Positions 12,235 to 59,398 of a stretch of DNA of 64,000 nucleotides are shown here, in pieces. The stretch's first letter is position 1; each line of letters starts with the position of its first letter. A model generated the notes under the pieces. The model was not told where the DNA came from, did no database searches, and was given only the letters and a program-made list of their open reading frames with translations. The stretch covers positions 744,001 to 808,000 of the forward strand of contig CM075981.1 in NCBI GenBank assembly GCA_038087875.1, in the 5' to 3' direction. This stretch comes from Malacoraja senta (Eukaryota). Made by a program: the position numbers and the translations under genes.

Positions 12235-12331
12235 ATGGCGGTGGGACAGGGAGAATTCACCCACCAGAAACGGCCCAGATCCAGGGGAACAGTCGCTCTG
12301 TTGGTTCTTGTCGCTGTTGGTCTCACACCAG
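12235..12331 (+). CDS. Leader exon, CD300/pIgR-like receptor gene A (MAVGQGEFTHQKRPRSRGTVALLVLVAVGLTP-G)
   Basis: ATG, hydrophobic core and phase-1 donor CAG|GTAAAT matching the phase-1 V exons; near-identical paralog at 40322-40418. Confidence 0.8.
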
Positions 12332-15096
12332 GTAAATCATTGTTTTACAAAATGCTCTGTTCTTTAGAATTATTTACTAGCGCCTTGAATTATTTGTAAC
12401 CAAGAACCTCTCTGTATTGTGTGGGGAGCTGATGATAAATTGCTCAACACTCGTTAGTTCCTGTAGAGACTTCCATCAGCGGTTGTTGTCATGTTGTGTG
12501 CAGCCAAATCGCACCCAGCTAGCTCCCTGTGCAGAAGGGAGATAACTACCTACAGCTTGCCTGGCCTTGTGGACCTCATTGAAACTTACCAAATAGTGAA
12601 AGGCCTGGACAGAGTGGATGGGGTGAGGATGTTTCCACTAGGCACTCCCTCCACGCACTGCAATAGGAAATGTTGAACCTAAACCTAAGCATATTCAAAG
12701 AAAAAACCTGTGAAATCCAGCCATTGGGAACAGGCGGACATCTCAAATGAAGTAGCACCAGAGTGACTGTCCAATTTAGCATTTGGAGAAGTTGTGGTAA
12801 TCTCTCCCTTCTGATAAAAAACTGCTGCCTAACAACAGGCTCTGCTGCTCGAGCTGTTGTTCACACCGTGCTTTCCCCAGCCTCTGAGTTCTCCTCCAAG
12901 GTATTTGTCTTGTGGCCTGTGAGCAGACCTGCACTGATCTGATGATGTGTCTCCACCCCAGCTCCTGAATCTGCAGAGTTTCACATGTGTTAGAGACATA
13001 GAGTGATACAGTGGAAACAGGCCCTTAGGCCCAACTTGCCCACACCGGCCAACATGTCTCAGCAACACTCCATACACCCACCAGCCTTTGTGTGAAAAAG
13101 ACACCTCATGATTGTTCCAGGTGGACGTGGAGTTTGAAACATCAGTGGCAGATCCAGCTTCCTCCACATGCCGGGAAGTTTAGTTCAATGGGGCACAAAG
13201 TGCTGGCGTAACTCAGTAGGTCAGGCAGTATCTCATGATCTTGACTTGAAACGTCACCTATCCATGTTCTCCACAGATGCTGCCTGACCTGCTGAGTCAC
13301 CACAGGGAACTGGATATTCAGCTTTAGTAAAACACAAAGTGCTGGAGTAACACTGCAGGTCAAGTTGCATCTCATGGTGACTTTCCTTTAGTGACTTTAG
13401 AGATACAGCACAGAAACAGACCCATTGGTCCATCAAGTCCACACCAACCAGCGATCACACGGCACAGTAACACTATCCAACACACGAGGAACAAATTACA
13501 ATTTAAAACATTTTTTTTTTTTTTTTTTTTTTAATATTTTAATTTTATTAGAAGTAAGTACAATTGTATACAATCATATTTTCATAATACCTTTTATGTA
13601 CAGCTTCTTATTTAAAAAAAAAATTGTAATAAAGAAGAAAAAGAAAAAAGTTAGATAATGAAAAATAGAAAAATGTGAGATATATAGTGTGTGAAAAAGA
13701 AAAATAAAGATTGAAAAAAGAAAGTTGAGACATAGAAAATAGAAGAAAGAGAATAAAAGAAGAGAAGAGAAGAAAAGAAAATAGAAGTAAGGAGATCATT
13801 TATAATCTTGACCATCCGCAGTCACGGATTAGCTTTTACACCTGTTTTGCACCATATGTTTCCAAAAAGACAACAAATGGAGACCAACGTTATGAATTTG
13901 TTCAAATTTATCTATTAGGAGGAATCGCATTTCCTCAAGATGTGCGGTATCCAACATACTTGCAATCCACATTTTGAGCGTTGGTATTGGTGTATTTTTC
14001 CAAAATTTCAATATTATTTTTTTTGCTATTATTAAACCATAATTAAAAATTGACTTTTGAGATGAGCTCAATTTGTTCCCGTCTTCCATTACCCCAAATA
14101 TAATCAATTCATTATTGGGTTCCATTTTTGTCTTAAATAGTTTTGTAAATATTTTGAAAATATCACTCCAAAATCCATGAAGTTTTATACAAGAAACAAA
14201 AGAGTGTGTTATAGTTGCGTCTTGGGTTAAACATTTATCGCAAGTGGGCGATATATTTGGATAAAATTTATTTAATCTTGTTTTTGAGTAATATAATCTA
14301 TGTAAAATTTTAAATTGGATTAGATTATGTCTTGCGTTAATCGAACACTTGTGAATGTATGTCAAATACTTTTCCCATGTAGCCTTCGTAATTTTTATCA
14401 ATAATTCCCATTCCCACTCTTCTCTAATTACCTCGGTCACAGGTAAATCTATATTTAAGATACTATTATATAAATATGATATTAATTTTTGTGTATCAGC
14501 TTTTATATTCATTACTTCTTCTAGTAAATCAGGAGTTATTTTTTGATATCCCTGTATTACAAATCTGAAAATATTTAAAATAATGAGTGTTTTTCAGTTT
14601 AAATTTTAATTGTAATTGTTGAAATGATAATAAATCTCCCATTTCATACATGTCCCCGATCCTTTTAATTCTTAAACTTTCCCATTGATTATATATTTTA
14701 TCCATCATAGATGGTTTAAATAAAGGATTATTCGCTATCGGTGTTAACAATGATAGGTTTCTTAATTTTAAGGATAATTTTATTTGTTTCCATATTCTTA
14801 TTGTATCTTGTATAATTGGGTTTTTCTTATATATTGTATTGTTCATTTTTTTCGGGGAGAAGAGGATTGTTCCTATATTACAAGGATAACAATCCTCTTT
14901 CTCCATTTTTATCCATTCTGTCTGTTGAGTTGAACTATCCAACCAGTAAATTATATTCTTAATATGTATTGCCCAATAAATAGTAATACAAAAAATTTGG
15001 GAGTGAAAGTCCCCCGACATCTTTTGGTTTACATAAGTGTTCTTTTTTAATTCTATGTGAATTATAATCCCAAACAAAATTAGTAATATTAGCGTT

Positions 15097-15257
15097 AAAG
15101 AAGGAACTGCAGATGCTGGAAAATCGAAGGTACACAAAAATGCTGGAGAAACTCAGCGGGTGCAGCAGCATCTATGGAGCGAAGGAAATAGGTAACGTTT
15201 CCTTCGCTCCATAGATGCTGCTGCACCCGCTGAGTTTCTCCAGCATTTTTGTGTACC
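15097..15257. mobile_element. Penelope-derived foldback element: perfect 60-bp hairpin with 17-bp target-site duplication
   Basis: Arms 15129-15188 and 15198-15257 are exact reverse complements; TTAGTAATATTAGCGTT at 15080-15096 and 15258-15274. Confidence 0.85.
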
Positions 15258-15334
15258 TTAGTAATATTAGCGTTCAGTTTAGAAAAAAAATATTTTGGTA
15301 CATATACTGGTATAGATTGAAATAGGTATAATAA

Positions 15335-16750
15335 ACCCAATTATAAATAGCACAATTAGAACATGGAAACAAATAAAACAGAATCTAAAATTAAGAAACC
15401 TATCTCTCTCAATACCAATAGTTAATAACCCATCGTTTAAACCTTCAACCATAGACAAATCATTTATACAATGGGAAAGAATGGGAATCAAAACGCTCGA
15501 AGATCTGCATGAATTGGGAAAATTACTATCATTTCAACAACCACAACTGAAATATAATTTGAAAAATAATCAATATTTTAAATATCTACAAATTCGTGAT
15601 TACCTGAAAAAATACACAAAAGACATACATAATATGCCTTCCGACTTACTAGATGAAGCAATGAAGACAAAGGCGGAATCAGCTAATCTAATATCGTACT
15701 TATATAATATAATTTTAAACATAGAAATACCCACAACAGATGGAATTAGAAGAGACTGGGAACAAGAATTAGCTATAAAAATTTCAAAAGAGAGCTGGGA
15801 TAACCATTTACTACAGGTGCATAAATGTTCGATCAACGTACGACATACGCTCATCCAATTCAAAACATTACATAGACTATATTATTCAAAAACTAAATTA
15901 AATAAAATCTTTCCTAATGTTTCACCAATCTGTGATAAATGTCTATGTCAAGAAGCTACCATAGCGCATTCTTTTGTTTTTTGTACAAAAATCCAAAAAT
16001 TCTGGTATGAAATATTTGATATTTTCTCAAAATTAATTAAAATAAAACTGGTACCAAAACCAGAATGGATCATTTTTGGAATATCGGAAGGTATCCCTGA
16101 ATTAAACGTGTATCAGAAGAACTTATTCAATTACGGGCTAATAATGGGAAAAAAGCTCATACTTAAATTCTGGAAAAAAGCGCCCACACCAACAATATAA
16201 ATGTGGACATCAAATATGTTGGAAACATTACATCTGGAAGAGATGAGATTCCTCTTAGCAGGTAAAGCAGACCAATTCCAAAAGACGTGGTCTACGTTTC
16301 TGGACCTATTACAAGCATGAGGTGCAATAGTAATTTAAAAATTAAATAAATAAAGAAATGGTATCAGGACCTGGTAATGGGAGGTAAAACAATAAAAACA
16401 GACTTGGTTGGTGGTTCCCTTTCTGCGATTGTTCCTACTCTCTTTTTCTTTCTTTACTAGGATCTACTTTCTTACTTTACTTCCTTCTCTAACTTCTTTT
16501 CTAAGGGGCTTTCTTTTCACAACACTCTCTTGCACTTCACGACTCTTGCGCACTTTCTTTACTTTTCTTACTTCTATCTTTCTCTTAAAGCTCAAAAAAA
16601 TGAAGCGGTATAAAAAATGTATTAAGATATAAGTGTTGTGTATTACTGTAATTTACCGTACTTCTAATAAAAATAATTTAAAAATAAATTTAAAAAAAAA
16701 AAAAAATTTTAATTAAAAAAATAAAAAAAAAAATTAAAAAAAAAAAAATT
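15335..16750 (+). mobile_element. 5'-truncated L1 inserted antisense inside the host L1
   Basis: ORF2 C-terminus 15481..16200, 3' UTR and poly(A) at ~16690-16748; GGTATAATAA duplicated at 15325-15334 and 16751-16760. Confidence 0.9.
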
Positions 16751-19700
16751 GGTATAATAACTGTGGTAGGAAGCTCATTTTAATAGCATTTATTCTGCCT
16801 ATTAATGATAAAGGGAGTGTTTTCCAAAATTTTATCATTATATTAAGTTTATTTATTAAGGGTATAAAATTGGCATTGAATAAAGCTTTATGTTTTCTAG
16901 TAATCTGAATACCCAAATATTTGAATTTTTCTGTTGCTATTTTAAAGGGGAATTTCAATAAGTGTGTAGATTCTTGAGGGTTTAGCGTCATGATTTCACT
17001 TTTGTTCCAGTTTATTCTATATCCAGAAAAGGACCCAAATTCCTCTATTAAATTTAATAAATTTGGTATGCTCGTTTGTGAATTTGTTATATATAACAAA
17101 ATATCGTCTGCATACAATGAAATTTTATTATTTGAGTCCCTAGTATTATAACCCTGAATATTCGGATGGCTTCTTATACTTTCAGCCAGAGGTTCTATCA
17201 TAAGGGCAAATAGCAGGGGTGATAAAGCACATCCCTGCCTATTACCCCTTGATAATTGAAATTTTTGAGATAACATGCTGTTAGTTAATATTCTTGCCAT
17301 CGGTTTATCATATAATAATTTCACCCATGCAATAAAATTCTCTCCCATATTAAATTTTTGTAATACTTTGTATAAATACTGCCATTCTACCTGATCAAAT
17401 GCTTTCTCTGCGTCCAAAGAAATAATTGCTAAGTCTTTTTCCTCCACTTTATGTGAGTACATTATATTAAACAGGCGTCTCAAATTATTAAATGAATATC
17501 TTTTGGGTATAAACCCCGTTTGATCAGGGTTTATCAATTTACTAATATATTTGCTTAGTCTTCTAGCTAAAGTCTTTGCTAGAATTTTCTGGTCTGTATT
17601 TAAAAGTGATATAGCTCTATATGAGCCTGGTTCCTCTAGATCTTTATCTTTCTTTGGAATAAGCGTAATACTTGATTCTGCTAATGTTTCAGGTAGTTTA
17701 TTTTCTTTAAAAACGTAAGTATATAAATTAAATAGATAGGGGGTTGTTATCTCATGAAACTTTTAATAAAATTCATTACTAAAACCATCTGGTCCCGGTG
17801 TCTTACCATTTTTCAGCGATTTTATTGTTTCACCTATTTCTTCGATTGTAATTTGCGCTCCTAGTTCTTCTTGTTCCAAAAGGTCAAGTTTTGGTAGATT
17901 ACATTTATCTAAAAAGTTTGTAATTTTACTATCTTCTGTTTTGGTTTTTGATGTGTATAAATTTTGATAAAATTGAGCAAATCTTTTATTTATATCTTTA
18001 GGTAGTGTTAGTAATTCACCATTCTCGGATTTAATTTTATTTATAGTATTTTCCTTTCCCTGTTTTTTCAATTGACGCGCCAACAGCTTATGTGGTTTGT
18101 CACCAAACTCAAAATGTTCCTGTTTTGTAATTTGGAATAATCTTATTACTCTTGCCGAGTGAATTCGGTTAAGTTTAAATTTCAGTAGTATTATCTTATT
18201 ATGTTTATCTATAGTGGGATCTTTAGCATTATCTAACTCTAACTGTCTTATTTCTTGTTCTAACAGCATCTGTTCTGTTTTATTCTTCTTATTTTGAAAA
18301 ATTTCATATGAAATTATAATTCCTCCAATAAATGCTTTAAATGTTTCCCATATTAAAGAAGGTGAGGTACCTGGTGTATCATTTATCTCAAAAAATGATA
18401 TCATTTGTTGTTTCAAATATTGATAACCCTGTAAGTCATTTAATATATATATGTATTAAACCTCCAAAAAAAATTCTTTCCCGGCATTCCTTCAAATTTT
18501 ACTAAAAAAGTCAATGGAGAGTGATCAGAAATACTACTAATATGGTAAGTTGGGTTAATTATATATGGCATTAATTTCCTATCCACTAAAAAATAATCAA
18601 TTCTTGAGTATGTTTTATGTACCGAAGAGTAAAACGAGTATTCCCTTCCTGCTGGGTTAGCGGATCTCCATACATCTGTTATGTTAGTATTTTTTATATA
18701 TGTATTTAGAAATTCACTAGTCTTAGATTTTATATTACTCCTTCTTTGTTTTGCTGATTTGTCTAAGTATGGATCTAAAACACAGTTGAAATCCCCTCCT
18801 ATTATGACATTTTGATAATTAAACTCCAGTATTATATCTATAATTTTCTCAAAGAATTGAGGGTTATCAAAATTCGGAGCGTAAATATTTACCATAGTTA
18901 TTGGGGTAGCATAAATTTCTCCCGAAACTATGATATACCTTCCCTCTTTATCTGATATAGTATTCTTTAATTTGAACGGTATACCTTTTCGAATAAGAAT
19001 AGCCGTACCTCTAGATTTAGAAGTAAATGACGAATAATATGTTTGGCCTATCCACTTCGCCTTTAATCTCATTTGTGTTTCCTGTTTCATGTGAGTTTCT
19101 TGCAAGTAAATGATGTCGCTTTTCAAAGATTTTAGGTGAGCAAAAATTTTACCCCTCTTTATTGGTTCATTGGCACCCCTTATATTCCAACTACAGAATG
19201 TGATTCCTCCATTCTTTATTTGCCTATCGTCTTGCATTGTATATCAAAGTAATATTCTTGAAATATATGGTGCAAACAAATACCTCCGTGTTCTGGACGT
19301 TGGTTGGTCATTCCAAATTTTTAAGTTTACCAAAGTTCTCCAAAAGTGCCTTAGATAAAGCAAGAAAAGTTGTGATTTACAATTAATTAAACACAAACTA
19401 AGTAAATACAAATTTGTATAGTGATTTAAAAAAAAAAGTGAAATTAAGGTATCTAAAAGCAGGTACCTTAAAGACAAATAGCCACCTAAGGTGGCGTAAG
19501 AATTATAGACTTCCGTTGATGTTATTTTACAGTGAGCCCCAATCGCTTATTAACACCTCGTAAAAAAACTACAAACCGTCTCATATCTTGTTTATTCTTG
19601 TATAACTTTAACAAACTAGCGTTAGTAAAAAGCCCCCCCAAAAAAAAAATAATAATAATAATAATAATAACAAAAATACGCAAAGATAAAATATTAAAAA

Positions 19701-20187
19701 GTTAAAAAAAATAATGTAATTAAACCCCAAATCCAAATATAAACCACAACGTATTCTCATTTCTATAAGTATTTGTACCGTACCAATTTATCTAACCAGC
19801 TACCCTACAAGCAGGTACCGAGGGGTTAACATCATTCCTGGATTTTTGCCAAGTTTATGTTGCGTTCCCACTCAAAAAGAAAGAAAAAAAATGTTAGAAA
19901 TGTTATAGACATTTTGGTTAAGCCAATGGTTTATTCATGATTATTCATATTTACTACACACACTCACAAGTCATTAGTTTTGTTAAAGTTAGTTAGTTAA
20001 TTGTAATTAGCATATAATAGTTAGATATTAATGTTATCTCGTCCCTGTTCTTTGTACAAGAGCTTTTCATTCAAGGTTAAACAATGTTCTCAAATACACA
20101 TTCCAGACAGATAAGCTCAGTAACTGTCTGAAAAATCCACCAGTTCCAGCTCCATCTTAAAAATTAAAAAGTTCCTTGTTCTTTCCT

Positions 20188-21214
20188 TTAGTCGTCTTCT
20201 TCCGATGTTTCCGATGCTTTCCTCATGATATCTTCTGCATATTTAAATGCTTTTTCTGGGTCCGTAAATGAGCGCTCAATTCCCTTACAAGTAATTTTCA
20301 TTTTTGCTGGGAAAACAACTCCATATCTGACTTTAGAAATACCCCTCAATATGTTTCTTGTCGGTGTAAACAAGTTCATTCTCTGGACAATCTCTGGAGG
20401 ATAATCACGGAAAAATCTGATCTTTTCCTCACGATATATCAAATTTTCACCATGAACAATCTTCTTCAGTATAGATTCCACTGAAGAAATATCAAGAAAT
20501 TTCACAATTTTCTGTCTTGGAGCAGCATTTATGCCTCTTGAGACACGTCCAACTCGTTGAACAGTATCTATTCTTAGTTCTTCCGGCAGTTTAAAAACCT
20601 CTTTGAGTAATTCAGTAACGAAAGTACGTGTTTGAGATACATGTTCTTCTCGTCCTTCTCTTGCTCCAACGATTCTCAAATTCTGCCTTCTCGCTCTCGC
20701 TTCCAAGTCCAAACATTTGTCAGTCATTCTTGCCAGCTTTTCTGCTTCATCTTTCTTTGATTTTTTCAGACTGTTTACTTCCATGATCATCTCTTTCATA
20801 TCACTTTCCATCTCTTCCATTCTCTCGTCAATGTTGTCCATCTTAGCATTTACACCAACAAATTTCTTATTATAGTCCTTTTCAATTCTAACAATTTCTG
20901 AGTTAAGTTTTTTTATCAAACTCATTATGTTGCTTCTTCAGCTCCTTTAACTCATCACAGGCACCATCAATTTTATGAGAGAATATTTCCATATTATTCT
21001 CCATACTCTTAATTGTAGTAGTAATTTCTACAAACATTTCCTTTACCTCCAGTTCTTTCTTTCCTCCTTTTGTAGCCATTTCCAGCACAACTCCTTGGCT
21101 ATCGGACTCCTCCTCGGAGCCTTCTTCAGTTGTTTGCAGAGTATCCAAAACACTTTTCAGCTGGAGGCTTATAGTGGCTTTTTTTGGTGCGTGTGAACAA
21201 GTCCCCTTGCTCAT
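20188..21214 (-). pseudogene. L1 ORF1 (coiled coil, RRM, CTD), frameshifted
   Basis: ORFs 20903..21214 and 20188..20925 with DLEARARRQNLRIVG and FRDYPPE motifs. Confidence 0.88.
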
Positions 21215-21764
21215 TTAAAAGTCCCGATTTTTACCGCGATTTTGCCGCGATTTAACGTCGTTATCTGATGATGTTTTCCTTATGCAAACCAAGCAGCTCC
21301 GTTGAGTTATTTTTAACTTTAAAACGGCTTTTTGATCATTTTTACGGGAGTAGAGCTCACTGCAGCGCCCTTTTTTTAAACAATTTTAACGAAAGCCAAT
21401 TAACCTACAAACCTGCACATCTTTGGACTGTGGGAGGAAACTGGAGCACCTGGAGAAAGCCCACGCTGTCACGGGGAGAACGTGCAAACTCCTTACAGAC
21501 AGCACCCGAGGTCAGGATGAAACATGGGTCTCTGGCCCTGTAAGGCAGCAACTCTACCACTGTGCCACCATGTCTCTACCTGTAACATTACCTATCCAAG
21601 TTCTCCAGCGATGTTGCCTGACCTGCTGAGCCATCGCAGGCTATTCAGCTTTAGTAAAGCACAAAGTGCTGGAGTAAATCAGCAGATCAGGCAGCATCTC
21701 TGGAGAACATGGATAGGTGACATTTATGGTTGAGACCTGAATAAGGGCTGGCCATTTAGATACA

Positions 21765-24700
21765 TATATACATAGAAAATAGGTGCAGGAGTAGGCCATT
21801 CGGCCCTTCGAGCCTGCACCGCCATTCAATATGATCATGGCTGATCATCCAACTCAGTATCCCCTACCTGCCTTCTCTCCATACCCCCTGATCCCCTTAG
21901 CCACAAGGGCCACATCTAACTCCCTCTTAAATATAGCCAATGAACTGGCCTCAACTACCCTCTGTGGCAGAGAGTTCCAGAGATTCACCACTCTCTGTGT
22001 GAAAAAGTTTTTCCTCATCTCGGTCTTAAAGGATTCCCCCCTTATCCTTAAGCTGTGACCCCTTGTCCTGGACTTCCCCAACATCGGGAACAATCTTCCT
22101 GCATCTAGCCTGTCCAACCCCATAAGAATTTTGTACATTTCTATAAGATCCCCTCTCAATCTCCTAAATTCTAGCGAGTATAAGCCAAGTCTATCCAGTC
22201 TTTCTTCATATGAAAGTCCTGACATCCCAGGAATCAGTCTGGTGAACCTTCTCTGCACTCCCTCTATGGCTATAATGTCCTTCCTCAGATTTGGAGACCA
22301 AAACTGTACGCAATACTCCAGGTGTGGTCTCACCAAGACCCTGTACAACTGCAGTAGAACCTCCCTGCTCCTATACTCAAATACTCTTGCTATGAAGGCC
22401 AACATACCATTCGCTTTCTTCACTGCCTGCTGCACCTGCATGCCTACTTTCAATGACTGGTGTACCATGACACCCAGGTCTCGCTGCATCTCCCCATTTC
22501 CTAATCGGCCACCATTTAGATAATAGTCTGCCTTCCCGTTTTTGCCACCAAAGTGGATAACCTCACATTTATCCACATTATACTGCATCTGCCAAACATT
22601 TGACCACTCACCCAGCCTATCCAAGTCACCTTGCAGTCTCCTAGCATCCTCCTCACAGCTAACACTGCCCTCCAGCTTAGTGTCATCCGCAAACTTGGAG
22701 ATGTTGCTTTCAATTCCCTCATCCAGATCATTAATATAAATTGTAAATAGCTGGGGTCCCAGCACTGAGCCTTGCGGTACCCCACTAGTCACTGCCTGCC
22801 ATTGTGAAAAGGACCCGTTTACTCCTACTCTTTGCTTCCTGTTTGTCAGCCAGTTCTCTATCCACATCAATACTGAACCCCCAATACCGTGTGATTTAAG
22901 TTTGTATCCTAATCTCTTATGTGGTACCTTGTCGAAAGCCTTCTGAAAGTCCAGATACAACACATCCACTGGTTCTCCCCTATCCACTCTACTAGTTACA
23001 TCCTCGAAAAATTCTATGAGATTCGTCAGACACGATTTATCTTTCGTAAATCCATGCTGACTTTGTACAATGATTTCACCACTTTCCAAATGTGCTGCTA
23101 TCCCATCTTTAATAACTAGCAGTTTCCCCACTACCGATGTTAGACTAACTGGTTTGTAATACCCCATTTTCTCTCTCCGTCCCTTCTTAAAAAGTGGGGT
23201 TACGTTTGCTACCCTCCAATCCTCAGGAACTACTCCAGAATCTAAAGAGTTTTGAAAAATTATCACTAATGCATCCACTATTTCTGGAGCTACTTCCTTA
23301 ACTACTCTGGGATGCAGCCTATCTGGCCCTGGTGATTTATCGGCCTTTAATCCATTCAATTTACCCAACACCACTTTCCGACTAACCTGGATTTCACTCA
23401 GTTCCTCCCTCGTTTGACCCGCGGCCCCCTGCTATTTCCGGCAGATTATTTATGTCTTCCTTAGTGAAGACGGAACCAAAGTAGTTATTCAATTGGTCCG
23501 CCATATCCTTGTTCCCCATGATCAATTCACCTGTTTCTGACTGCAAGGGACCTACATTTGTTTTAACTAATCTCTTTCTCTTCACATATCTATAAAAACT
23601 TTTGCAGTCAGTTTTTATGTTCCCTGCCAGTTTCCTTTCATAATCTACTTTCCCTTTCCTAATTAAGCCCTTTGTCCTCCTCTGCTGGTCTCTGAATTTC
23701 TCCCAGTCCTCTGGTATGCTGCTTTTTCTGGCTAATTTGTACGCATCATCTTTTGCTTTGATACTATCCCTGATTTCCCTTGTTATCCACGGATGCACTA
23801 CCTTCCCTGATTTATTCTTTTGCCAAACTGGGATGAACAATTTTTGTAGTTCATCCATGCAGTCTTTAAATGCCTTCCATTGCATATCCACCGTCAACCC
23901 TTTTAGAACTAATTGCCAGTCAATCTTGGCCAATTCACGTCTCATACCCTCAAAGTTACCTTTCTTTAAGTTCAGAACCGTTGTTTCTGAATTAACAATG
24001 TCACTCTCCATCCTAATGAAGAACTCAACCATATTATGGTCACTCTTGCCCAAGGGGGCACGCACAACAAGACTGCTAACTAACCCTTCCTCATTACTCA
24101 ATAGCCAGTCTAGAATAGCCTCCTCTCTCGTTGGTTCCTCTACATGTTGGTTTAGATAACTATCCCTTATACATTCCAAGAAATCCTCTTCCTCAGCACC
24201 CCTGCCAATTTGATTCACCCAATCTATATGTAGATTGAAGTCACCCATTATAACTGTTTTGCCTTTGTTGCACGCATTTCTAATTTCCTGTTTGATGCCA
24301 TCCCCAACTTCACTACTACTGCTAGGTGGCCTGTACACAACACCCACCAGCGTTTTCTGCCCCTTAGTGTTTCGCAGCTCTACCCATACCGATTCCACAT
24401 CCTCCAAGCTAATGTCCTTCCTTTCCACTGCGTTAATCTCCTCTCTAACCAGCAACGCTACCCCACCTCCTTTTCCTTTCTCTCTATCCCTCCTGAATAT
24501 TGAATATCCCTGGATGTTCAGCTCCCAGCCTTGGTCACCCTGGAGCCATGTCTCCGTGATCCCAACTATATCATAATCATTAATTGCTATCTGCACGTTC
24601 AACATCCACCTTATTACGAATGCTCCTTGCATTGAGACACAAAGCCTTCAGGCTTGTTTTTACAACGCTCTTACCCCTCATACAATTATGTTGAAAAGTG

Positions 24701-45736: not shown

Positions 45737-45852
45737 GGAGGCAGGTACATTTCCACAGCATGTTGTTCTGTCGATTGCCTTGACAATTGTCTTTCTTCTG
45801 TTCATCACTGCCATTATCCTATGTGTAAAAATGAGGCAGAAAAAGAAAACTG
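45737..45852 (+). CDS. Gene B exon 4, uncharged transmembrane segment and basic stop-transfer
   Basis: Strong acceptor ttttttcttgtattttgcag|, phase 2/1, donor CTG|GTAAGT; EAGTFPQHVVLSIALTIVFLLFITAIILCVKMRQKKKT. Confidence 0.88.
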
Positions 45853-47190: not shown

Positions 47191-47225
47191 GGCAGCAACT
47201 CTACCGCTGCGCCACTGTGCCGCCA

Positions 47226-48860: not shown

Positions 48861-49165
48861 CCAATCCCACAGACGTGCAGGTTAGTAGGTTAATTTGCCT
48901 CCATAAATTGCCCCACTGCTAACAGTGGCAGAAAATTCCACAGATTCACAACTCTCTGGGTGAAAAGTGTGTCTCTGGGAGAACTAATGTGAACGGGTGA
49001 TCAGTGGTCGGTGGGCCGAAGGGCCTATTTACATATTGTATTTCTAAACTAAGTTTCATGAAAGGGAATCAAGTATGACATCAATGGATAAAATGCAACA
49101 TTATCCTTTGCGTGTTTGACTTCAATGAAGTCCATATAAGAATTAATTATCATTATATTTTTCAG

Positions 49166-49218
49166 GCTCAAATGGCAATAGAATTATAAGTCAGGAAAAT
49201 CCAGCAGGAAGTTTCAAG
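49166..49218 (+). CDS. Gene B exon 5, short cytoplasmic exon (G-SNGNRIISQENPAGSFK)
   Basis: Acceptor atatttttcag|, donor AAG|GTAAGG; phase 1/0 exactly bridges exons 4 and 6. Confidence 0.72.
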
Positions 49219-50159
49219 GTAAGGCAATGCCGCAGCATGTTGTAGCCCCAGGGAAATAAAACAACCTTACTGGAGGTCTCCCTTGAAGGGTCGCACATCA
49301 CATGACATATCGATCACTTGATCGCCCATAACATGGCACCTCAATGATCGAGTGCCCATCCTTGGCCTTCTCCACTGCCTTGGTGAGGCCAGGCACAAAC
49401 TCAAAGCACAACATCTGGGTTAGATTCTGACCACGGGTGCTGTCTGTGTGGAGTTTGCAGGTTCATGCTGTGACCACCTGGGTTTCGTCTGGATGCTCCG
49501 GTTTCCTCCCCCATCCAAAAGACGGGCGGATTTGTAAGTGAATTGCGCTCCATAAATTCCCCCCAGTGGGTAGGGAGTGGATGAGAAAGTGGGATAACAT
49601 AGATCTAAGGTGGACAGGTGATCGATGGTCGCTGTGAGGCAGTAGGTCTACCAGCTGTGTCACTCTGCCCATCCTTTCACTTCCTTTGTTGCCATTAATG
49701 GTCTCTACTGAGTTCACTCCTGTTGTCAGTCGGCAGCACAGTGGCGCAGCGGTAGAGTTACTGCCTCACAGCGCCAGAGACCCGAGTTCGATCCTGACCT
49801 CGGATGTTGTCTGTGCAGTGTTTGTGCGTTCTCCCTGTGACCGCCCGGGTTTTCTCCGGGTGATCCGGTTCGCTCCCACATTCCAATGATGTGCAGGTTT
49901 GTAGGTTAATTGGCTTTTGGAAATTGCCCCCAGTGTGTAGGATGCGAAAGTGGGACAACATGGAACAACTGTTAATGGGTGATCGATGGTCAGAGTGGGC
50001 TTGGTGGGTCAAGGGGTCTGTTTCCATTCAGCATCTCTAAACTAAACTAAACTAAGTAATTATGTTTAGGTCTGAAGAAGGGTCTCGACCCAAAATGCCA
50101 CCTATTCCTTTTCTCCAGAGATGTTGCATGACTCGCTGGTTACTCCAGCATTTTGTGTA

Positions 50160-50305
50160 TGCAGTCCTCAAAAAGGCAGCCAGCATCATCACAGACCCAC
50201 ACCACCCTGGCCGCGCTCTTATTTCACCTCTGCCATCGGGAAGAAGGTACAGGAGACCAAAAACTGTAACATCCAGGTTCAGGAATAGCTTCATCCCTAC
50301 AACCA
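50160..50305 (+). mobile_element. Rex1/Babar-like LINE 3' fragment
   Basis: KKAASIITDPHHPGRALISPLPSGRRYR..SRFRNSFIP. Confidence 0.6.
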
Positions 50306-50456
50306 NNNNNNNNNNNNNNNNNNNNNNNNNNNNNNNNNNNNNNNNNNNNNNNNNNNNNNNNNNNNNNNNNNNNNNNNNNNNNNNNNNNNNNNNNNNNNNN
50401 NNNNNNNNNNNNNNNNNNNNNNNNNNNNNNNNNNNNNNNNNNNNNNNNNNNNNNNN
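50306..50456. other. Assembly gap (151 N)
   Basis: N run. Confidence 1.
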
Positions 50457-50773
50457 AGATGCTGGAAAAATCGAAGGTAGACAAAAATGCTGGAGAAACT
50501 CAGTGGGTGAGGCATCATCTATGGACTGAAGGAAATAGGTGACGTTTCGTGTTGGAAATGTCAAAGCAGCCCTTGCTTTCCCTCTCTCTCCATCCCTTCC
50601 CCCTTCCCAGTTCTCCCACCAGTCTTACTGTCTCCGACTACATTTTATCTCTGTACCGCCCACTCCCCTGACATCAGTCTGAAGAAGGGTCTCGACACGA
50701 AACGTCACCTACTCCTTCGCTCCATAGATGCTGCCTCACACGCTGAGTTTCTCCAGCATTTTTGTCCACCTTC
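50457..50773 (+). mobile_element. Penelope-derived foldback element with hammerhead core, just upstream of the ITIM exon
   Basis: Imperfect inverted arms ~50475-50552 and ~50698-50773; CTGAAGA..GAAACGTC at 50679-50706. Confidence 0.65.
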
Positions 50774-50817
50774 TGACACTATCTTTAAGTAATTATGTTT
50801 CTCACTTGATTCCAAAG

Positions 50818-50973
50818 GAAACCCCTGTCATTTATACCACCGTGACAACCCGTTCTCCAGCTAGCATGGAGAATACTTACATGAACCTTCAGGATATGAA
50901 CACACAAGGACAAGCCAAGAGGCAAGGTGCTGCAGAGATTGTGTACGCAACAATTCTCACTGATAATAATTAA
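50818..50973 (+). CDS. Gene B exon 6, ITIM-bearing tail
   Basis: Phase-0 acceptor ttccaaag|; ETPVIYTTV..ENTYMNL..AEIVYATILTDNN*; two ITIM-consensus motifs and YxN. Confidence 0.85.
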   Translation, partial: ETPVIYTTVTTRSPASMENTYMNLQDMNTQGQAKRQGAAEIVYATILTDNN

Positions 50974-52443
50974 TTCAAGCACCGGAGAACACCAAAAAAA
51001 CATTGGAAACGGACAGTCTGGTAAAATTGTCTTTGCTTACCCACAAATCCAGACATTTGTGTTCAGATCTCACCAAGAACAGTGCATGGTCATCAAGATA
51101 ACTGCAGATTTTGGTAATCTGATAAAGAGAGAACATAGGAAAGTACAACAGGCCCTTCGGCCCACAATATCCGTGCCGAAAAAGAAAAATGCGAAAACAT
51201 TCGGCAGGTCAGGCAGCAACTGTGGAGATAGAAACAGAGATAACACGATAGTTCGATGACCTTAAGGTGAGAGGGGAAAGATTTAGTAGGAACCCGAGGT
51301 TCAACTTTTTCAATCAGAGGGTGGTGGGTGTAAGGAACAAGCTGCTAAAGGAGTTAGTTGAGGCAGGTACTTTAACAACATTTAAAAGACTTTTGGACAG
51401 GTACATGGATAGGACAGGTTTAGAGGGATATGGGCCAAAAGCGGGTAGGTGAGACTATCATAGATGGGTTGGCAAGGACAAATTGTGCCAAATGGCCTGG
51501 TTCGAGCTGTTTGTCTCTCAGACTATATTTTGTATTCAACGTAAGAAAATAAGAGCAGAAATAGGCCATTCAGCCCTTCAAGCCAATTCTGCCATTCAAC
51601 ACAATCATGGCTGATCTGCCTCCAACCTCATCTCCTCTCCTGTGCCAGTTCCTCAATGCCCTCGATTCCCTGCCCCTTCAAACTCCTCTTTAAATACCCC
51701 TAATGATCCAGCCTCAATAACCCCCCAGTAGCAGGCTATTCCAGGGATTCATCACTCCGTTCCGCTTTCCTCAAATGCCGCCGAACATGTTGAGATTTTC
51801 CACCATTTTTCTTTTGCCTTAATTAGAACAGCTGTGGAATTTGAACTGCTATTAATTTGTGATTTAAAAATAAATATGCATATGTACTGTTGAACACAAA
51901 ACTGCCGGCTTGTTGTTAAAACTCACTGGTTGACTTTCCACCATCCAGTTTACCAAGAAAAACAGTACTGTTACTAAGTCATAGTAACAGTAACTTGCCC
52001 ACATCAACCAACATGCCCCATCTACACTAGTCCCACCTGACTATGTTTGGCCAATATCCCTCTAAACCTGTCCTACCCAGGTACCTGTCTAATTGTTTCT
52101 TAAACGTTGCAATAGTCCCTGCCTCAACTACCTCCTCTGGCACCTTGTTCCATACACCCACCACACTGTGCTTGATTGTCAGACCTATATAGAATATGGA
52201 ATATAGAAAGGAACAGCACAGGAGCAGGCCCTTCGGCCCACAATGCAGGTGCTGAGCATAGTGTCACGATGAACTAAACTCATCTTCCTGCACATGATCC
52301 ATAACTCCCCCCCCCCCCCATTTCCACATATCCACGTGCCAATCTAAAAGCCTCTAAAGAATGCTACTATCTCATTTGCTGCCATCACCATCCCTGACAG
52401 CACGTTCCAGGCAACTCACACATGCTTGGATTAAGCACCATGA

Positions 52444-52765
52444 GGGCAGCACGGTAGCGCAGTGGTAGAGTTGCTGCCTTACAGCGCTTGCAATGCCAGA
52501 GACACGGGTTCGAACCCGACTACGGGTGCCGTCTGTACGGAGTTTGTACGTTCTCCCCGTGACCTGCATGGGTTTTCTCCGAGACCTTCAGTATCCTTCA
52601 ACACTCCAAAGACGTACAGGTTTGTAGGTTAATTGGCTTGGTATAAATGTAAATTGTCACCAGTGTGTGTAGGAATAGATAGTGTTAATGTGCGGGGATC
52701 GCTGGTCGGCATGGACTCGTTGGGCCGAAGGGCCTGTTTCTGCGCTGCATCTCTAAACTAAAAAA
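52444..52765 (+). mobile_element. tRNA-derived SINE (HE1-like); representative of roughly 20 copies or fragments in the window
   Basis: A box TAGCGCAGTGG, B box GGTTCGAACCC, core and ctaaacta tail. Confidence 0.85.
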
Positions 52766-54429
52766 CGAAACTAACCATCTACCATATCTATGTCCATTTT
52801 TGTAGACCATCTCCGATGTTTTTTTTATTCTCATGTGTACCAAGGACACGGTCATGTGTACCAAGGGTATCATGCGTTCTCCCCATGACCTGCGTGGGTT
52901 TTGTCCAGGTGCTCAGGTTTCCTCCCACACTCCACAGACTTACAGGTTTACAAGACAATTGGCAGGGTGTAAATTGCCCCCAGTGTGTGTAGATTAGTGT
53001 GCGGGGATAGCTGGGCAGCACAGACCCGGTGGGCCGAAGGGCCTGTTTCCGCGCTGTACCTCGAAACTAAAAGTCCCCTCAACTCCTCCCAAGATCCCAG
53101 ACTAGATCAACAGTTGTTTGAGAAGTCAGCTGCAGGGTTGTGGAACTATTCTTGCACTGCTCCTGGGAAGGTTTTCACGTGCTTTCCAGACTATTGCTTT
53201 AATTTCCCTGTTTTTAATTTTGTGAATGTTTCCGTGAAGTGCAGTGGCTTGCAAATATGTGTATGAGGTACAAGAATCGCAAGTGAGAGATTATGTAAAT
53301 ATGTACAAATGTTTTGTAATGAAACATCTACAGATGACATGGGAGATGTTGTAAGCATACAATAAAGTACACTAGTCTTCTGAATACCTGGTGAGCCCAA
53401 GATCTTTACGACTTTGTCGAAGGTGGTTTTGCGGATGGACGTAGCACACAGAACAGCACAGGAACAGGCCCTTCGGTCCACTTTGTCCATGCCAAACATT
53501 AGGCAAAGTTAAACTGATCTCATCTGCCTGCACATAGTCCACTATCCCTCCACCCCCTGCATATCTATGTGCCTATCTTATACTTGTACTGAGATGTATA
53601 CAAAAATGAATTTCACTGTACCTCGGTACATGACAAATAAAGTACCATACCATACTATCTAAAAGCCTCAGTGGGCCGAAGGGCCTCCATCTCCAAACTC
53701 TAAAGCAAAGAGTGCCACAGCAGTAGATTTGCTGCCTCATGGCGCAGGAGACCCAGGTTCGATCCTGACCATGGGTGCTGTCTCTCTGGAGTTTGTACGT
53801 TTTCCCTGTGATCTCGTGGGTTTTCTCTCGCTTCCTCCCGCATTCCAAAGACGTGCAGGTTAATTGGCTACTGTAAATTGCCCCTAGTGTGTAGGATAGA
53901 ACTAGTGTATGGGTGATCGCTGGTCGATGTGGACTCAGCGGGCCGAAGGACCTGTTTCCACACTGTATTTCTAAACTAAACTCAACTACAGCATTACATA
54001 TCAGATGGGGAATGGGATAAATCAATAGCTGAAGGAGTCAGCTGCATCAGAAGACCATCGGTGTACAATCGAGCTTCACAAAGCATGTGGTAAGAGAAGT
54101 TGTTTCAATTGCAATGTCCTCCAAACAGCAACCCTACCGCTGCGCCACCATGCTGCCCCGTGAAAAAGCCTCTGGTTATTAAACTGGAAGAGACATGGGG
54201 GCGGCACAAAATGTGGTGAGTGATAGGTGGATACAGGTGAGGAGAGGGGGGGGGGGGGTTGATTTAATGCAATTATTGATTACTGACCATCCAAACAACA
54301 TTAAATATTTAAACACATCACAGATTTCCGCTGGCAATTCTCATTGCTCTTGTTCGTCTAACAAAAGGAGAACAGACACATTTAGTTGCATTTAACAGTT
54401 TTTCATGTTTACAAGAAATTTAAAAAACG

Positions 54430-55640
54430 CCTCACTGACCTAAATCCAACTCTCTTGAATACATTCAGTGAATTGGCCTCCACTGCCTTCTATGGTGGAG
54501 AATTCCACAGATTCACAACTCTCTGGGTGAAAATGTTTTCCCTCATCTCAGTCCTAAATGGCCTACCACTTATTTTTAAACTATGACCCCTGGTTCTGGA
54601 ATCCCACAACATCGAGAACATTTTTCCTGCATCTAACCTGTCCAATCCTCTAAAAATTTTATATGTTTCTATAAGATCCCCTCTCTTCCTTCTAACTTCC
54701 AGCGAATACAAGCCCAGTCGACACATTCTTTCATGATATGTCAGTCCCGTCATCCTGGGAATTAACCTGGTGAACCAAAACTGGACATAATACTCCAGGT
54801 GTGGTCTCATCAGGGCCATGTACAACTGCAGTAGGACTTCCTTGCTCCCAAACTCAAATCCTCTCGCAATGAAGGCCAACATGCCATTGGCTTTCTTCAC
54901 TGCCTGCTGTACCAGCATGCATACTTTCAGTGACTGATGTACAAGCACACCCAGGTCTCGTTGCACCTCCCCTTCTCCTAATCTGACACCATTCAGATAA
55001 TAATCTGTTCTTGCCACCAAAGTGGATAACCTCACATTTATCCACATTATACTGCATCTGCCATGCTTCTGCCCACTCACTCAACCTGTCCAAGTCACCC
55101 TGCAGCCTCATAGCATCCTCCTTGCAGCTCGCACTGCCACCCAGCTTTGTGTCATCCGCAAACCTAGTGTTGTTACATTTAATTCCCTCGTCTGAATCGT
55201 TAATATATATTGTAAATAACTGGGATCCCAGCACCGAGCCTTGCATCGCCCCACTAGTCACTGCCTGCCATTCTGAAAAGGACCCGTTAATTCCTACCCT
55301 TTGCTTCCTGTCTGCCAACCAGTTCTCTATCCATGTCAATGCCCCACCTCCAATATCATGTGCTCTAATTTTGCACACTAATCTCTTGTGTGGGACCTTG
55401 TCAAAGGCTTTTTGAAAGTCCAGATACTCCACATCCACTGGCTCTCCCTTATCCATTCTACTTGTTACATCCTCAACAAATTCCAAAAGATTAATCAAGC
55501 ATGATTTCATAAATCCATGCTGACTTTGACCGATCCTGTCACTGCGTTCCAAATGCACTGGTATAACATCCGTAATAATCGATTCCAGCATCTTCCCCAC
55601 TACCAATGTAAGACTAACTGGTCTTTTATTCCTCGTTTTC
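54430..55640 (-). mobile_element. CR1 LINE fragment (RT to near the 3' end)
   Basis: ORFs 54854..55642 (FADD) and 54490..55080. Confidence 0.88.
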
Positions 55641-58600
55641 ACATTCTTGAGTGGTCCCCGTAACCTTTGACTCTCTTACCCTGAGTCAATCATGCTTACA
55701 ATCTTCGCAATGTAAAGTTCTGCAATTGGAGCTCTCGTTCCTGGTCACACTACACTTGACACTCTCCCAGCACCGCTGACATGCAGTAAATGATTGCATT
55801 CATTGCACAACCACCATTTTTACTCATACCAATAAAAAATTGCTCAAAACTGCAAACCAAACCAAAATTGTCCCATTGAAATTCAAGGCACAGTACTCTC
55901 CTTATTACTGAAAGACCACTCAGCTGACACTGGCATTTCTAAGTTTACTTTAGAGGAACAGTGGGGGTGGAGGCCGGTTCTCTGGATACTTTCATGAGAG
56001 AGCTAGATAGGGCTCTTAAATATAGCGGAGTCAGGGGATATGGGGAGAAGGGAGGAATGGGGTACTGATTGGGGATGATCAGCCATGATCACATTGAATG
56101 GTGGTGCTGGCTCGAAGGGTCGAATGGCCTACTCCTGCACTTATTGTCTATTGTCTATTGTCTATTGAAACAAGCCCCTCGTACCACCACGTCCCACACA
56201 CTAACACCATCCTACACATCAGGAACAATTTACAATTATACCAAGCCCATTAACCTACAAACCTGCACATCTTTGGAGTGTGGGAGGAAACTGGAGATCC
56301 CGAAGAAAACCCACGCAGGTTACAGGGAGGACGTACAAACTCCATACAGACAAGCATCCGTAGTTAGGATCGAACCTGGGTCTCTGGTGCTGTAAGGCAG
56401 CAACTCCACCACTGCGCCCCAAGATATTATGATACCTCATGATATTCCAAGTCTGTCTACAGTGAGATACAAGAGGACCCTCATACCTGGTCTACTCCAT
56501 CCATGGAGGTCAAGATCACATTGACTCTCATCTTCCTAGTCATAGGATCTGACCATCGTGCAGCATGTCTCCGCAGCATCAGAGAGGTTATCATGGTACT
56601 GAATTAGAATCCTAGACTCATAGTTATATAGCATGGAAATAGACCTTTCACTCATCCATGCTGCCCAAAATGCCCCACATGAGTAGTCCCATTTGGCCGC
56701 ATTTGATCCATACCCCTCTAAACCATTCCTATCCATGTACCTGTCCAATTGTCTTTTAAATGTTGTTACAGTAGGTGCCTTAGCTACCTCCTTTGACAGC
56801 TCGTTCCATATACCCACCACATTCTGAGTGAAAAGTTTGCCCCTCAGGTTCCTATTAAATCCCTCCCCCCTCAATTTAAACGTCCTCTGGATTTTGATTC
56901 CCCTTTTACTCTGGGTAAAAGGCTCTGTGAACTCACCCTATAAATTCCTCCTCATGATTGTATACACCTCTATAAGATCACCCCTTAGCCTCCTGTGCTC
57001 CAAGGAATAAAGTCCTAGTTTATCCAAATTTAGTTTAGTTTATCATTGTCACATGTACCAAGGAACAATTATTATTTTTTGTTGCATGCTATCCAGCAAA
57101 GGGACTGTACATGATTGCAATCAAGCCAGCCAGTGTACAGATACGGGATACAGGGAAATACTGTAGGTTTAGTGAAAGTTAAAGTCCAGTAAAGTCCAAT
57201 TAAAGATGGTTCAATGGTCTCCAATGAGGTGGATGGTAGATCAGGATCACTCTCTAGTTAGTAATCAGAAGGTTCCGTTTCATGCTAACATGAAGGAAGG
57301 AAGAAACTCCTTGAATCTGCAAGTGTGCGTTTTCAAACTTCTGTAACTCTTGCCTGATGAGAGAGGGGAGAAGAGGGAGTGGCCAGGGTGAGACACATCC
57401 TCCTTGAAGCTCAGACCTTCGAGTCCTGGCAAAATCCTGATTAATCTTCTCAGCTCTCTTCCCAGCCATAAAGGAATAATTTCAACTGTTTAGGAAGGAA
57501 CTGCAGATGCCGGTTTAAACCGAAGGTAGACACAAAAAGCCGGAGTAACTCAGCGGGTCAGACAGCATCTCTGGAGACAACCCCGTACGCTTGGACTATC
57601 CGACACACTAGGGACAATCTACAACTTAGCGAAGCCAGATAACCTACAAATCCACACGTCTTTGGATGGTGCGAGGAAACCGGAACACACGGAGAAAATC
57701 AAGCGGTCATGGGGGGAACGTACAAACCCCGTACAGACAGCACCCACAGTCACAATTGAACCCAGGTCTCTGGCGCTGTAAATTCAGCAAGTTGTGAAAC
57801 AGGATTTTTGTCAATGTTCCTTATTCTACGTTGGATTACAAAGTATAATTTTTTTTTAAAGTGCATCTCCCAACGCTGATCTTTAAGGAGGACAGGATTG
57901 GGATATGACCACGCAAGCTGTGGATACCCTCACTGGAAACCTGCTTCAGTTCAGCTTGTCTTGTGCCCAAACCTCTGCCAACCACAGTTAATGCCCCAAA
58001 GTGGAACCGTTGACAATGTGCACGCAACAGATTGCAAAACAGGATATGGGTCAATGTTCCTTACTCCATGTCACATTGCAAAGCATTTGTTCATTCGTGA
58101 GGAAGTTTGCACACAGAACAGGTGGTTATAAATCAAACAAATTGGAGACCGCTTCATCGGAAAACAAGGACCTCTCTCTCTCTGGAACCACGATGTTTTA
58201 CATTCTGCTGTTTCTGACTGTGACTTCAAGTAAGTTTTACCACTTAAAGCTGAGATGGACAGATTATTGATTAGTACGGGTGCCAGGGGTTATGGGGAGA
58301 AGGCGGGAGAATGGGGTTAGGAGTGAGAGATAGATCAGCCATGATTGAATGGCGGAGTAGCCATGATGGGCCAAACAACCTAATTCTGCCACATTAACTA
58401 ATGGTCATGGAACCATAGCGCAGTTATATGTTAACACGAAGATTAACTCTTGTTATTTAAATAAGTGATGATACACTGCTGTTCAGCCAAAGGACCAGGA
58501 GCCTAGAAAGGAACCAATTAACTTTACATTTTAGCAAGAGTTAAAATGAACTGTGACAAGAGCATGGGATTTAGCAGAGGATTTAAGAGACTTTCGGACT

Positions 58601-59286
58601 GCCACGTGCATGTAAGAGAAAAAAGACACAAAGTGCTGGAGTAACTCAGCGGGTCAGGCAGCATCCTGTTGACGGTAAAATCAGTGTCAGTACTTTGAGA
58701 AAGCGTGGTTGATCACATTCCAGTCCATTGATAAATACTCCTTGGCCCTGACTAAAGTCCCTCTGTCCTTAGTACACCCAGTGGCCCGACCATTGTGAAT
58801 GTCTACCCTTATTTGATACCAAAAACAAATAACTTCACACTTGTCACGGTTCAATACCTGCTGGCATTGCTCTGCCGAACATACCTGTTGCTTCTTATCC
58901 CTCCGTGGTCTATGATTATGGTACTATCCAAAATGATACAATTTTGGTGTAATCTGTAAACTCGTTAATCATACTTCCAACATTAACATCTAAGGCCGGC
59001 AGATGGGACTAGGCATCTTGGTCGGCGTGGGGAAATTGGGTCGAAGGACATGTTTTCGCGCTGTATGTCTGACCACCAACATGAACATCTAAGTTGTTAA
59101 TGTATGTAGTCATGGAACACCTCCAAGGTATAGGTGCATGTTGCGATATAAACATCTCACCAATGTTGAGACGCCACAACCTTGGATCACACTGAATGAT
59201 TCCGTGTGCAATATGATGAAAATAAATTGTCCAGCGTTGATCTTTGATAACTGTGTGGAAGTAATAATATTTCCTTGGATTTCCAG

Positions 59287-59398
59287 GGACATCGTGCTGA
59301 ATGTTCGCCGTGTTTGGGGTGTGTTACGCTGGGTACTCTTTGGAGTTCTGCATCTCTTCCCGGTTTCCATCTGCTGTATGACAACTTTTAAAAGGTAA
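59287..59398 (+). CDS. Orphan activating-type TM exon (DIVLNVRRVWGVLRWVLFGVLHLFPVSICCMTTFKR*)
   Basis: Intact phase-2 acceptor and open frame; no leader, V or stalk exon of its own between 51 and 59 kb. Confidence 0.65.

Follow-up and report, generated by a model that had tools for sequence, protein, structure and literature searches.

Does the skate Malacoraja senta carry paired activating and inhibitory receptors on contig CM075981.1 (assembly GCA_038087875.1), and are both members of such a pair intact there? We addressed this for positions 744,001 to 808,000 of the contig, hereafter the window (the whole stretch of 64,000 nucleotides that was analyzed), in which an earlier sequence-only reading had proposed a cluster of genes related to CD300 and to the polymeric immunoglobulin receptor (pIgR). 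The window probably falls within a large skate gene cluster that encodes type I membrane receptors with two interchangeable 3' modules, and it holds one inhibitory gene (gene B), one activating-type gene with a damaged stalk (gene A) and a duplicated activating module further downstream (module C). The receptors would be built from a common leader, one or more CD300/pIgR-type V domains, a Thr/Ser-rich stalk and one of the two modules, namely an uncharged transmembrane segment (TM) followed by a tail with an immunoreceptor tyrosine-based inhibitory motif (ITIM), a YxN motif and a second ITIM (module 1), or a TM in which a conserved Arg sits close to the outer end, followed by a short tyrosine-free tail (module 2).

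The closest DNA is chromosome CM021389.1 (34.49-34.67 Mb) of the skate Amblyraja radiata, to which the unique parts of the window are 88-95% identical in nucleotides and with which order is kept, bearing out an origin earlier called only probably elasmobranch. No window stretch is nearly identical to Amblyraja, and the encoded proteins are also distinct from the Amblyraja, Leucoraja and Rhinoraja models, as expected of another skate or of a divergent paralogous block. All receptor exons described here lie on the plus strand, in DNA rich in transposable elements (TEs), including several long interspersed elements (LINEs) with reverse-transcriptase open reading frames (ORFs), repeats resembling short interspersed elements (SINEs) and Tc1-like transposase ORFs. 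The exons and features of the sequence-only reading were all found where it had placed them and on this strand, and our search for further V exons or other receptor exons in the window left the V exons at three. The models used for comparison were P0001-P0003 (A. radiata, “CMRF35-like molecule 3”), P0006 and P0007 (Leucoraja erinacea, “pIgR-like”), and P0005 and P0020 (Rhinoraja longicauda), with genomic loci L001-L003 from Amblyraja and L004 from Rhinoraja longicauda.

An intact inhibitory gene

Gene B (40322-50973), of inhibitory type, is intact: its six exons all have GT-AG sites and fitting phases, and together they give a 300-residue ORF without stops. Its features are as follows.

40060-40259, no strand: assembly gap 1, upstream of gene B; homology to the gene A copy resumes at 40260, equivalent to 12173
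40322-40418, plus: leader exon, ATG, phase-1 donor
43317-43640, plus: V exon (V3), AG/GT sites, phase 1/1; Pfam V-set, matches to solved structures
44977-45133, plus: Thr/Ser-rich stalk exon, phase 1 to 2
45737-45852, plus: uncharged TM exon, phase 2 to 1; VVLSIALTIVFLLFITAIILCV; Kyte-Doolittle peak 3.0, residues 195-228
49166-49218, plus: cytoplasmic exon 1 (cyt1), SNGNRIISQENPAGSFK, phase 1 to 0; junctions as in Leucoraja P0006
50306-50456, no strand: assembly gap 2, in the intron separating cyt1 from the ITIM exon, where a TE insertion of ~750 bp ends
50818-50973, plus: last exon, phase 0; ITIM VIYTTV, YMNL, ITIM IVYATI, stop

The uncharged TM with an ITIM tail proposed for 45737-50973 could thus be read exon by exon, through cyt1 to the VIYTTV/YMNL/IVYATI exon. 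Its junctions match those of Leucoraja P0006 (73% identity through the TM, cyt1 and ITIM exon) and Rhinoraja P0005, and the interval 40260-58665 is colinear with the Amblyraja gene encoding P0001, whose locus contains an ITIM exon 94% identical to that of gene B (ratio of non-synonymous to synonymous changes, dN/dS, 0.29). The two gaps are the only N runs in the window, lie outside the coding exons of gene B and are crossed by no reading frame. Gap 1 stops 62 nt before the gene B ATG, covering only promoter or 5' untranslated sequence, and hides a conserved upstream region still visible in copy A (11853-12234), while the sequence on either side of gap 2 aligns in order with an Amblyraja intron (L002 19737/19745) that runs on without a gap and contains no exon at this point.

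These observations bear on a reading of the whole stretch as a graveyard of receptor pseudogenes with no functional gene. The TE-rich surroundings, the broken stalk of gene A and the orphan state of module C are in its favor, and a high dN/dS in the V exons could partly stem from relaxed constraint; yet all six exons of gene B are intact and flanked by consensus splice sites, its ITIM exon is conserved, none of the nine V exons compared contains a stop or frameshift, and their dN/dS lies well above 1 and not near it. We hold this reading to be quite improbable, and treat gene B as a receptor gene whose product, once ligand is bound and its tyrosines are phosphorylated, would bring in SHP-1/2-type phosphatases, and perhaps Grb2 through YMNL, and so dampen the cell, as its motifs lead us to infer.

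The RefSeq model P0001 (“CMRF35-like molecule 3”) omits the conserved ITIM exon present in its own locus (L002 20111-20263) and terminates instead in a stretch equivalent to window positions 51050-51094, which is probably an annotation error or an ITIM-less isoform. As the true end of gene B, 51050-51094 was rejected, because the ITIM exon is conserved, has a fitting phase and is included in the models of both Leucoraja and Rhinoraja. Separately, the frame stays open for 25-30 codons beyond the stalk donor, both at 45134-45224 in gene B and at 33581-33656 in gene A (SVTQNTNTALHSFTTVL...). This read-through resembles the extra segment of the Pristis isoform P0017 (SVTQRDNSALRSSTTAL), a likeness that suggests a putative conserved alternative donor in the stalk exon.

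Leader and V exons of CD300/pIgR type

Gene A shares the leader and V exon types of gene B, with two V exons in place of one.

12235-12331, plus: gene A leader exon (signal peptide), ATG, donor CAG/gtaaat; 100% identical to the leader of Amblyraja P0001/P0003
25906-26229, plus: gene A V exon 1 (V1, V-set immunoglobulin), AG/GT sites, phase 1/1; Pfam V-set 4e-14
29250-29573, plus: gene A V exon 2 (V2), AG/GT sites, phase 1/1; Pfam V-set

Both leader exons end in the phase-1 donor CAG/gtaaat and encode 32 residues, MAVGQGEFTHQKRPRSRGTV(A/V)LLVLVAVGLT(P/S), which differ at exactly the two residues counted earlier (A21V and P32S). The three V exons measure 324 nt each, with AG/GT sites and phase 1/1, and give Pfam V-set E-values of 4e-14 to 1.4e-12. 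Their ectodomains show the close relationship expected of paired receptors, as the V domains are 69-74% identical in protein, the introns flanking them 94-96% identical in DNA, and the two receptor types clustered. Within gene A, 25460-28813 and 28837-31486 are a tandem duplication.

Among solved structures, the best matches were pIgR (6e-26, summed over its domains), teleost pIgR (5.5e-20) and mouse CLM-1/CD300f (7e-17), the latter being the best single domain with 64.8 bits vs. at most 31 bits for any pIgR domain, followed by CD300a (1.8e-11) and CD300c (1.4e-10), and far more weakly by NKp44 (1e-5), TREM2 (8e-3) and TIM. The earlier assignment of the V domains to a CD300/pIgR-like type therefore agrees with both Pfam and the solved relatives. 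One could go further and take the genes for the cartilaginous-fish pIgR itself, carrying J-chain-bearing IgM across epithelia instead of regulating leukocytes, given that pIgR ranks first among the solved structures, that many relatives are named “polymeric immunoglobulin receptor-like” in RefSeq and that the best full-length matches outside elasmobranchs are bird pIgRs (1e-39 to 1e-34). However, the single-domain score favors CD300f, ITIM tails and a TM Arg are signaling features and not a pIgR-type sorting tail, and the multi-V RefSeq models checked on their loci stitch together several tandem units (two in Amblyraja P0002, four in Rhinoraja P0005), all of which makes a transport receptor highly improbable and leaves a family of signaling receptors as our reading.

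An extra C-C' disulfide (Cx6-7C) is found in nearly all human CD300, TREM and PIGR domains (bioRxiv 10.1101/2022.04.21.489081), but is gone from all three window V domains, which read RW(S/L)KG...(S/P) without Cys. Across the V exons and models inspected (P0003, P0004, P0012, P0015, P0016), Cx7C is kept in sharks and in stingrays and mantas (Chiloscyllium P0004, Mobula P0012, Hemitrygon P0015), lost in skates and sawfish, where Ser replaces Cys, and half-lost in Narcine as well as in one Amblyraja gene.

Two 3' modules across elasmobranchs

Protein searches returned the same leader/V/stalk unit from Amblyraja, Leucoraja, Rhinoraja, Narcine, Hemitrygon, Hypanus, Mobula and Pristis, as well as from the sharks Chiloscyllium, Heptranchias, Pristiophorus, Stegostoma and Rhincodon, in proteins named “CMRF35-like molecule N” or “polymeric immunoglobulin receptor-like.” Both signaling modules recur among these RefSeq proteins of skates, rays and sharks. 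The Arg-TM motif W-x-x-x-R-W-x-x-F (W..[LIT]RW[VLI][LI]F) is retained by skates, Narcine, Hemitrygon and the shark Chiloscyllium, and the ITIM-YxN-ITIM tail by sharks as well as by skates, rays and sawfish. Activating and inhibitory labels were interleaved in a tree of 40 V domains, with 16 label changes in 40 rows and no clustering, and some activating and inhibitory forms of Narcine have identical V domains. The proposal of a paired activating/inhibitory family is thereby upheld, and the family would evolve through duplication in tandem, swapping of 3' modules and selection that diversifies the V domains. We rejected the assignment of Narcine P0009 (Arg-TM) and P0011 (ITIM tail) to one gene, which would have spoken for a splice switch, their leaders differing at four residues and their stalks at one; they are probably neighboring paralogues, to judge from these differences.

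At the Rhinoraja locus, leader, V and stalk are followed in tandem units by a donorless uncharged TM exon and then an Arg-TM exon; the last unit retains the complete inhibitory cassette. The relic TM exons of these units are a footprint of 3' module replacement. Four such relics (L004 18964-19071, 29869-29979, 44896-44979 and 2980-3063) have an intact acceptor and have lost the donor, the exon reading ...IIGFVKKKTGK and then a stop, with the Arg-TM exon 2.1 kb downstream.

Two of the models are likely chimeric. Rhinoraja P0005 takes V exons from four units (L004 10001-73957, over 64 kb), Amblyraja P0002 (L001 10001-36910, over 27 kb) links one unit's leader to V, stalk and TM exons that belong to the unit after it, and both skip intervening leader, stalk and TM exons. 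The sequence-only reading had expected the short exons of this family to be easily missed by annotation; in the sister species they are annotated, so that part did not stand, but with visible errors (P0001, P0002, P0005), which is the part that did.

Selection on V and signaling exons

The rapid evolution proposed for the family is visible in the V exons, with dN/dS of 2.2-2.6 inside the window, and not in the signaling exons, where it is low. Across the nine V exons of the window and Amblyraja, dN/dS exceeded 1 in 35 of 36 pairs (median 1.9), a consistent pattern and not a formal test, as each pair has few synonymous changes (3-12) and the pairs are non-independent. The changes are concentrated in the B-C, C'-C'' and F-G regions. 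Besides the ITIM exon, the conserved exons included Arg-TM exon A of gene A (0.16) and the leader (0.37 or identical).

An activating-type gene with a broken stalk

Gene A (12235-36773) consists of a leader, a TE-filled intron of 13.6 kb, V1, V2, an Arg-TM exon and a tail exon, with the remains of a stalk exon between V2 and the Arg-TM exon.

28336-28682, plus: copy of the broken stalk exon behind V1 (acceptor and 5' part, then SINE and middle part), lying in the tandem duplication
31003-31355, plus: gene A stalk exon, 5' and middle pieces (31003-31037 and 31305-31355) with an old SINE between them
31605-33497, plus: LINE with reverse-transcriptase ORFs (31693-33397) inside the stalk exon, matching other LINE copies by self-blast
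33501-33580, plus: gene A stalk exon, 3' piece; LNTLPPEASTTREATSTEIPGSSPRY; phase-2 donor CAG/gtcagt
34590-34697, plus: Arg-TM exon A, phase 2/2; 97% identical to Amblyraja L003
36704-36773, plus: tail exon A, KKTAETLEMGSAAVEGGEEQRR, stop; used in P0003 and P0007

A second Arg-TM exon and a second tail exon form module C.

59287-59394, plus: Arg-TM exon C, orphan duplicate with a His in the hydrophobic core; duplication 33956-35307 = 58663-60004, 93%
61940-62009, plus: tail exon C, duplicate of tail exon A; duplication 35581-37053 = 60761-62301

The Arg-TM exons encode ...NVRRVWGVLRWVLFGVL(L/H)LFPVSI(S/C)C(V/M)TTFK, in which the Arg is residue 6 of a hydrophobic span of ~23 residues, within the N-terminal third as had been proposed. 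An Arg near the outer TM end is the FcR-gamma pattern of NKp46, Fc-alpha-RI, GPVI and LILRA, and module 2 would signal only through an Asp-bearing adaptor that carries an ITAM (immunoreceptor tyrosine-based activation motif). The tail needs correction. The few residues described earlier would be true only of an unspliced exon (AG/GTAA giving R and a stop), and a phase-matched tail exon exists, encoding KKTAETLEMGSAAVEG(G/R)EEQRR and a stop at both 36704-36773 and 61940-62009. As the RefSeq models Amblyraja P0003 and Leucoraja P0007 use this exon, with the same Arg-TM/tail junction, the activating cytoplasmic tail is longer than the five residues of the unspliced version, at about 27 tyrosine-free residues (TTFKRKKTAETLEMGSAAVEGGEEQRR).

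Stalk pieces were recovered by tblastn at 30996-31037 and 31302-31355. The SINE insertion between them is common to Amblyraja (counterpart L001 19537-20276), and the LINE at 31605-33497 is not present at the matching point there. Amblyraja activating units have an intact stalk exon and a second, SINE-disrupted copy, the latter before the Arg-TM exon. With the stalk of gene A broken by both SINE and LINE, its function is doubtful. Direct splicing of V2 to the Arg-TM exon was rejected, as it sets phase 1 onto phase 2 and yields GTSC and then a stop. Gene A would work only if a short cryptic stalk exon were used; such a hypothetical exon, with its start at one of two AG sites (33523 or 33541) that follow the pyrimidine-rich LINE tail, could restore the frame and give a protein of 326 residues. 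That gene A makes a membrane Arg-TM receptor is therefore possible, with the balance tipping somewhat to the negative.

Relics of an uncharged TM, cyt1 or ITIM exon were sought near gene A and none was found. Its first intron is filled, at 13800-25200, with LINEs of at least two kinds, one in an AT-rich block at 14-20 kb with endonuclease and reverse-transcriptase ORFs, the other a CR1/L2-like element at 21.8-24.6 kb.

An orphan activating module

Module C is a duplication of the gene A 3' end (33956-37053 = 58663-62301, 87-93% identity) that begins 430 bp past the first exon of a further gene, gene D.

58193-58229, plus: gene D leader exon (further V-set receptor gene), MFYILLFLTVTS, phase-1 donor

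Colinearity with Amblyraja stops at 58665, the exact start of module C. The gene D leader is orthologous to the first exon of a 354-residue Amblyraja gene at L002 29103, and the remainder of gene D must lie beyond module C or beyond the window end. The ATG used upstream in the Amblyraja ortholog is AAG in the window. Splicing of the gene D leader to Arg-TM exon C was rejected for the same phase clash (1 onto 2). Both Arg-TM exons of the sequence-only reading, at 34590 and 59287, are thus real as exons, but the one at 59287 has no leader, V or stalk exon of its own. Module C is most likely a dead or not-yet-used copy, and with the gene A stalk broken and the 59287 exon an orphan, it is doubtful that the window holds a working activating partner for gene B. 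In both copies the intron between Arg-TM and tail exons contains a Tc1/mariner-like element (34931-36368 and 59624-61602; transposase ORFs at 35142-36103), an insertion common to modules A and C and not seen in the Amblyraja copies examined.

Module C also opens the way to a splice switch, in which the gene B stalk exon (phase-2 donor at 45133) would be spliced to its own uncharged TM (45737) or else to Arg-TM exon C and tail exon C, 14 kb downstream. The 45133-59287 join is in frame and gives a 251-residue ORF whose full length shows 80% identity to the Amblyraja activating model P0002. Rhinoraja has an uncharged TM exon between stalk and Arg-TM exon in at least four units, and the four-V Rhinoraja model P0020 carries an Arg-TM (WAVLRWILF) and may skip the relic exon. 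However, module C lies beyond the gene B stop codon and beyond the leader exon of another gene, the 790 bp of sequence available for the orthologous position in Amblyraja do not contain it, its Arg-TM exon has a His in the TM core and differs from copy A by four nonsynonymous changes and one synonymous change, and the TM exon skipped in Rhinoraja has no donor whereas that of gene B is intact. We judge such a switch unlikely. A small chance likewise attaches to the idea that gene B is changing polarity or already uses both modules, as the Arg-TM/tail copy 8 kb behind its ITIM exon and the permissive phase could allow. If true, one ectodomain would be inhibitory or activating by choice of its 3' exons, and the Rhinoraja units, with a crippled uncharged TM exon followed by an Arg-TM exon, would look like the end state of such a take-over. 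A dead or idle module C beside an inhibitory gene B remains our preferred interpretation.

Comparison with known receptor systems

Mammalian CD300 is among the closest known systems, with a V ectodomain on a mucin-like stalk, clustered genes and a split into ITIM-tailed members (CD300a, CD300f) and charged-TM members (CD300b, CD300c, CD300e), mirrored here by VIYTTV/IVYATI in gene B and by the Arg of exons A and C. The gene B tail recalls that of CD300f, which mixes ITIMs with a YxN motif, whereas the charged TM residue of mammalian CD300 is Lys or Glu and that of the skate family an Arg near the outer leaflet. Further differences are the lost Cx7C disulfide and the two V exons of gene A vs. 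one in gene B. The window contains no flanking non-receptor gene by which its synteny could be compared with that of mammalian CD300.

In pIgR, one chain has several V-like domains in tandem; gene A has two V exons and gene B one, and the multi-V relatives checked on their loci (P0002 and P0005) combine exons from several tandem units. The tails are also unlike, being ITIM-YMNL-ITIM, or an Arg TM with the 27-residue tyrosine-free tail, and not a long non-ITIM sorting tail. Teleost PIGRL, CD300-like, NILT and NITR resemble the skate family in being lineage-specific, clustered and fast-evolving, with ITIM or charged-TM versions, and a cyprinid CMRF35-like protein (P0019), although a weak match, carries LIYTTV; however, identity is 34% only, the expansions are independent, and the TM and tail exons are others.

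The elasmobranch RefSeq models (P0001-P0003, P0005-P0007, P0020) have the same leader, V type, stalk, two 3' modules and exon junctions. Leader A is identical in P0001 and P0003, and differs by a few residues from the other elasmobranch models. Where these models and the window part is in the number of V exons (1-4 vs. 1-2), the absence of an intact stalk from gene A and the extra Arg-TM exon behind the gene D leader.

From the clearnose skate, the MDIR multigene family of activating and inhibitory immunoglobulin-superfamily receptors has been described as resembling CD300, TREM/TLT and pIgR (Cannon et al., 2006, Immunogenetics 58:362, as cited in PMC3031540), and is like the window family to the extent of that citation. 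Our searches, which returned other skate relatives at 65-77% identity (Leucoraja, Rhinoraja), included no Raja eglanteria protein and none named MDIR. The MDIR domains are reportedly of I- or C2-set, vs. V-set only in the window. A literature search on CD300, CMRF35 or pIgR in sharks and skates yielded nothing specific.

Weighing the reading and the adaptor question

The architecture, the motifs and their conservation are direct observations. Several points nonetheless weigh against a cluster of working paired receptors. The splice junctions in this genome are predictions from its sequence, and the supporting RefSeq proteins are computed models, some of them plainly wrong; to these come the small dN/dS counts and non-independent pairs noted above. 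Gene A retains the disrupted stalk copy only, further split by the LINE, and since the intact stalk exon of the Amblyraja activating units is missing from it, gene A may be a pseudogene, in which case the window contains no working pair. Finally, a 2014 survey reported no FcR-gamma homologue in sharks (PMC4016189), and CD3-zeta or DAP12 may accordingly be alternative adaptors for the Arg-TM form.

Significance for cartilaginous fish

The receptor family is already annotated by RefSeq in sister species, skate CD300/pIgR-like families were published as MDIR in 2006 (as far as the citing paper reports), and the window genes are a correct, well-resolved and ordinary example of an annotated family. 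For annotation, they flag RefSeq errors in sister species, namely skipped ITIM exons and units fused into multi-V “pIgR-like” proteins. They also place the family at odds with the published statement that sharks have no PIGR homologue, and no FcR-gamma (PMC4016189), and raise the question of which adaptor serves the conserved Arg.

More broadly, this locus lets one follow, exon by exon, how cartilaginous fish assemble and remodel paired receptors from a common unit and two swappable cassettes, the binding domain being under positive and the cassettes under purifying selection. Because both cassettes are kept from skates to sharks, a paired system of CD300/pIgR type would date to or before the origin of elasmobranchs.

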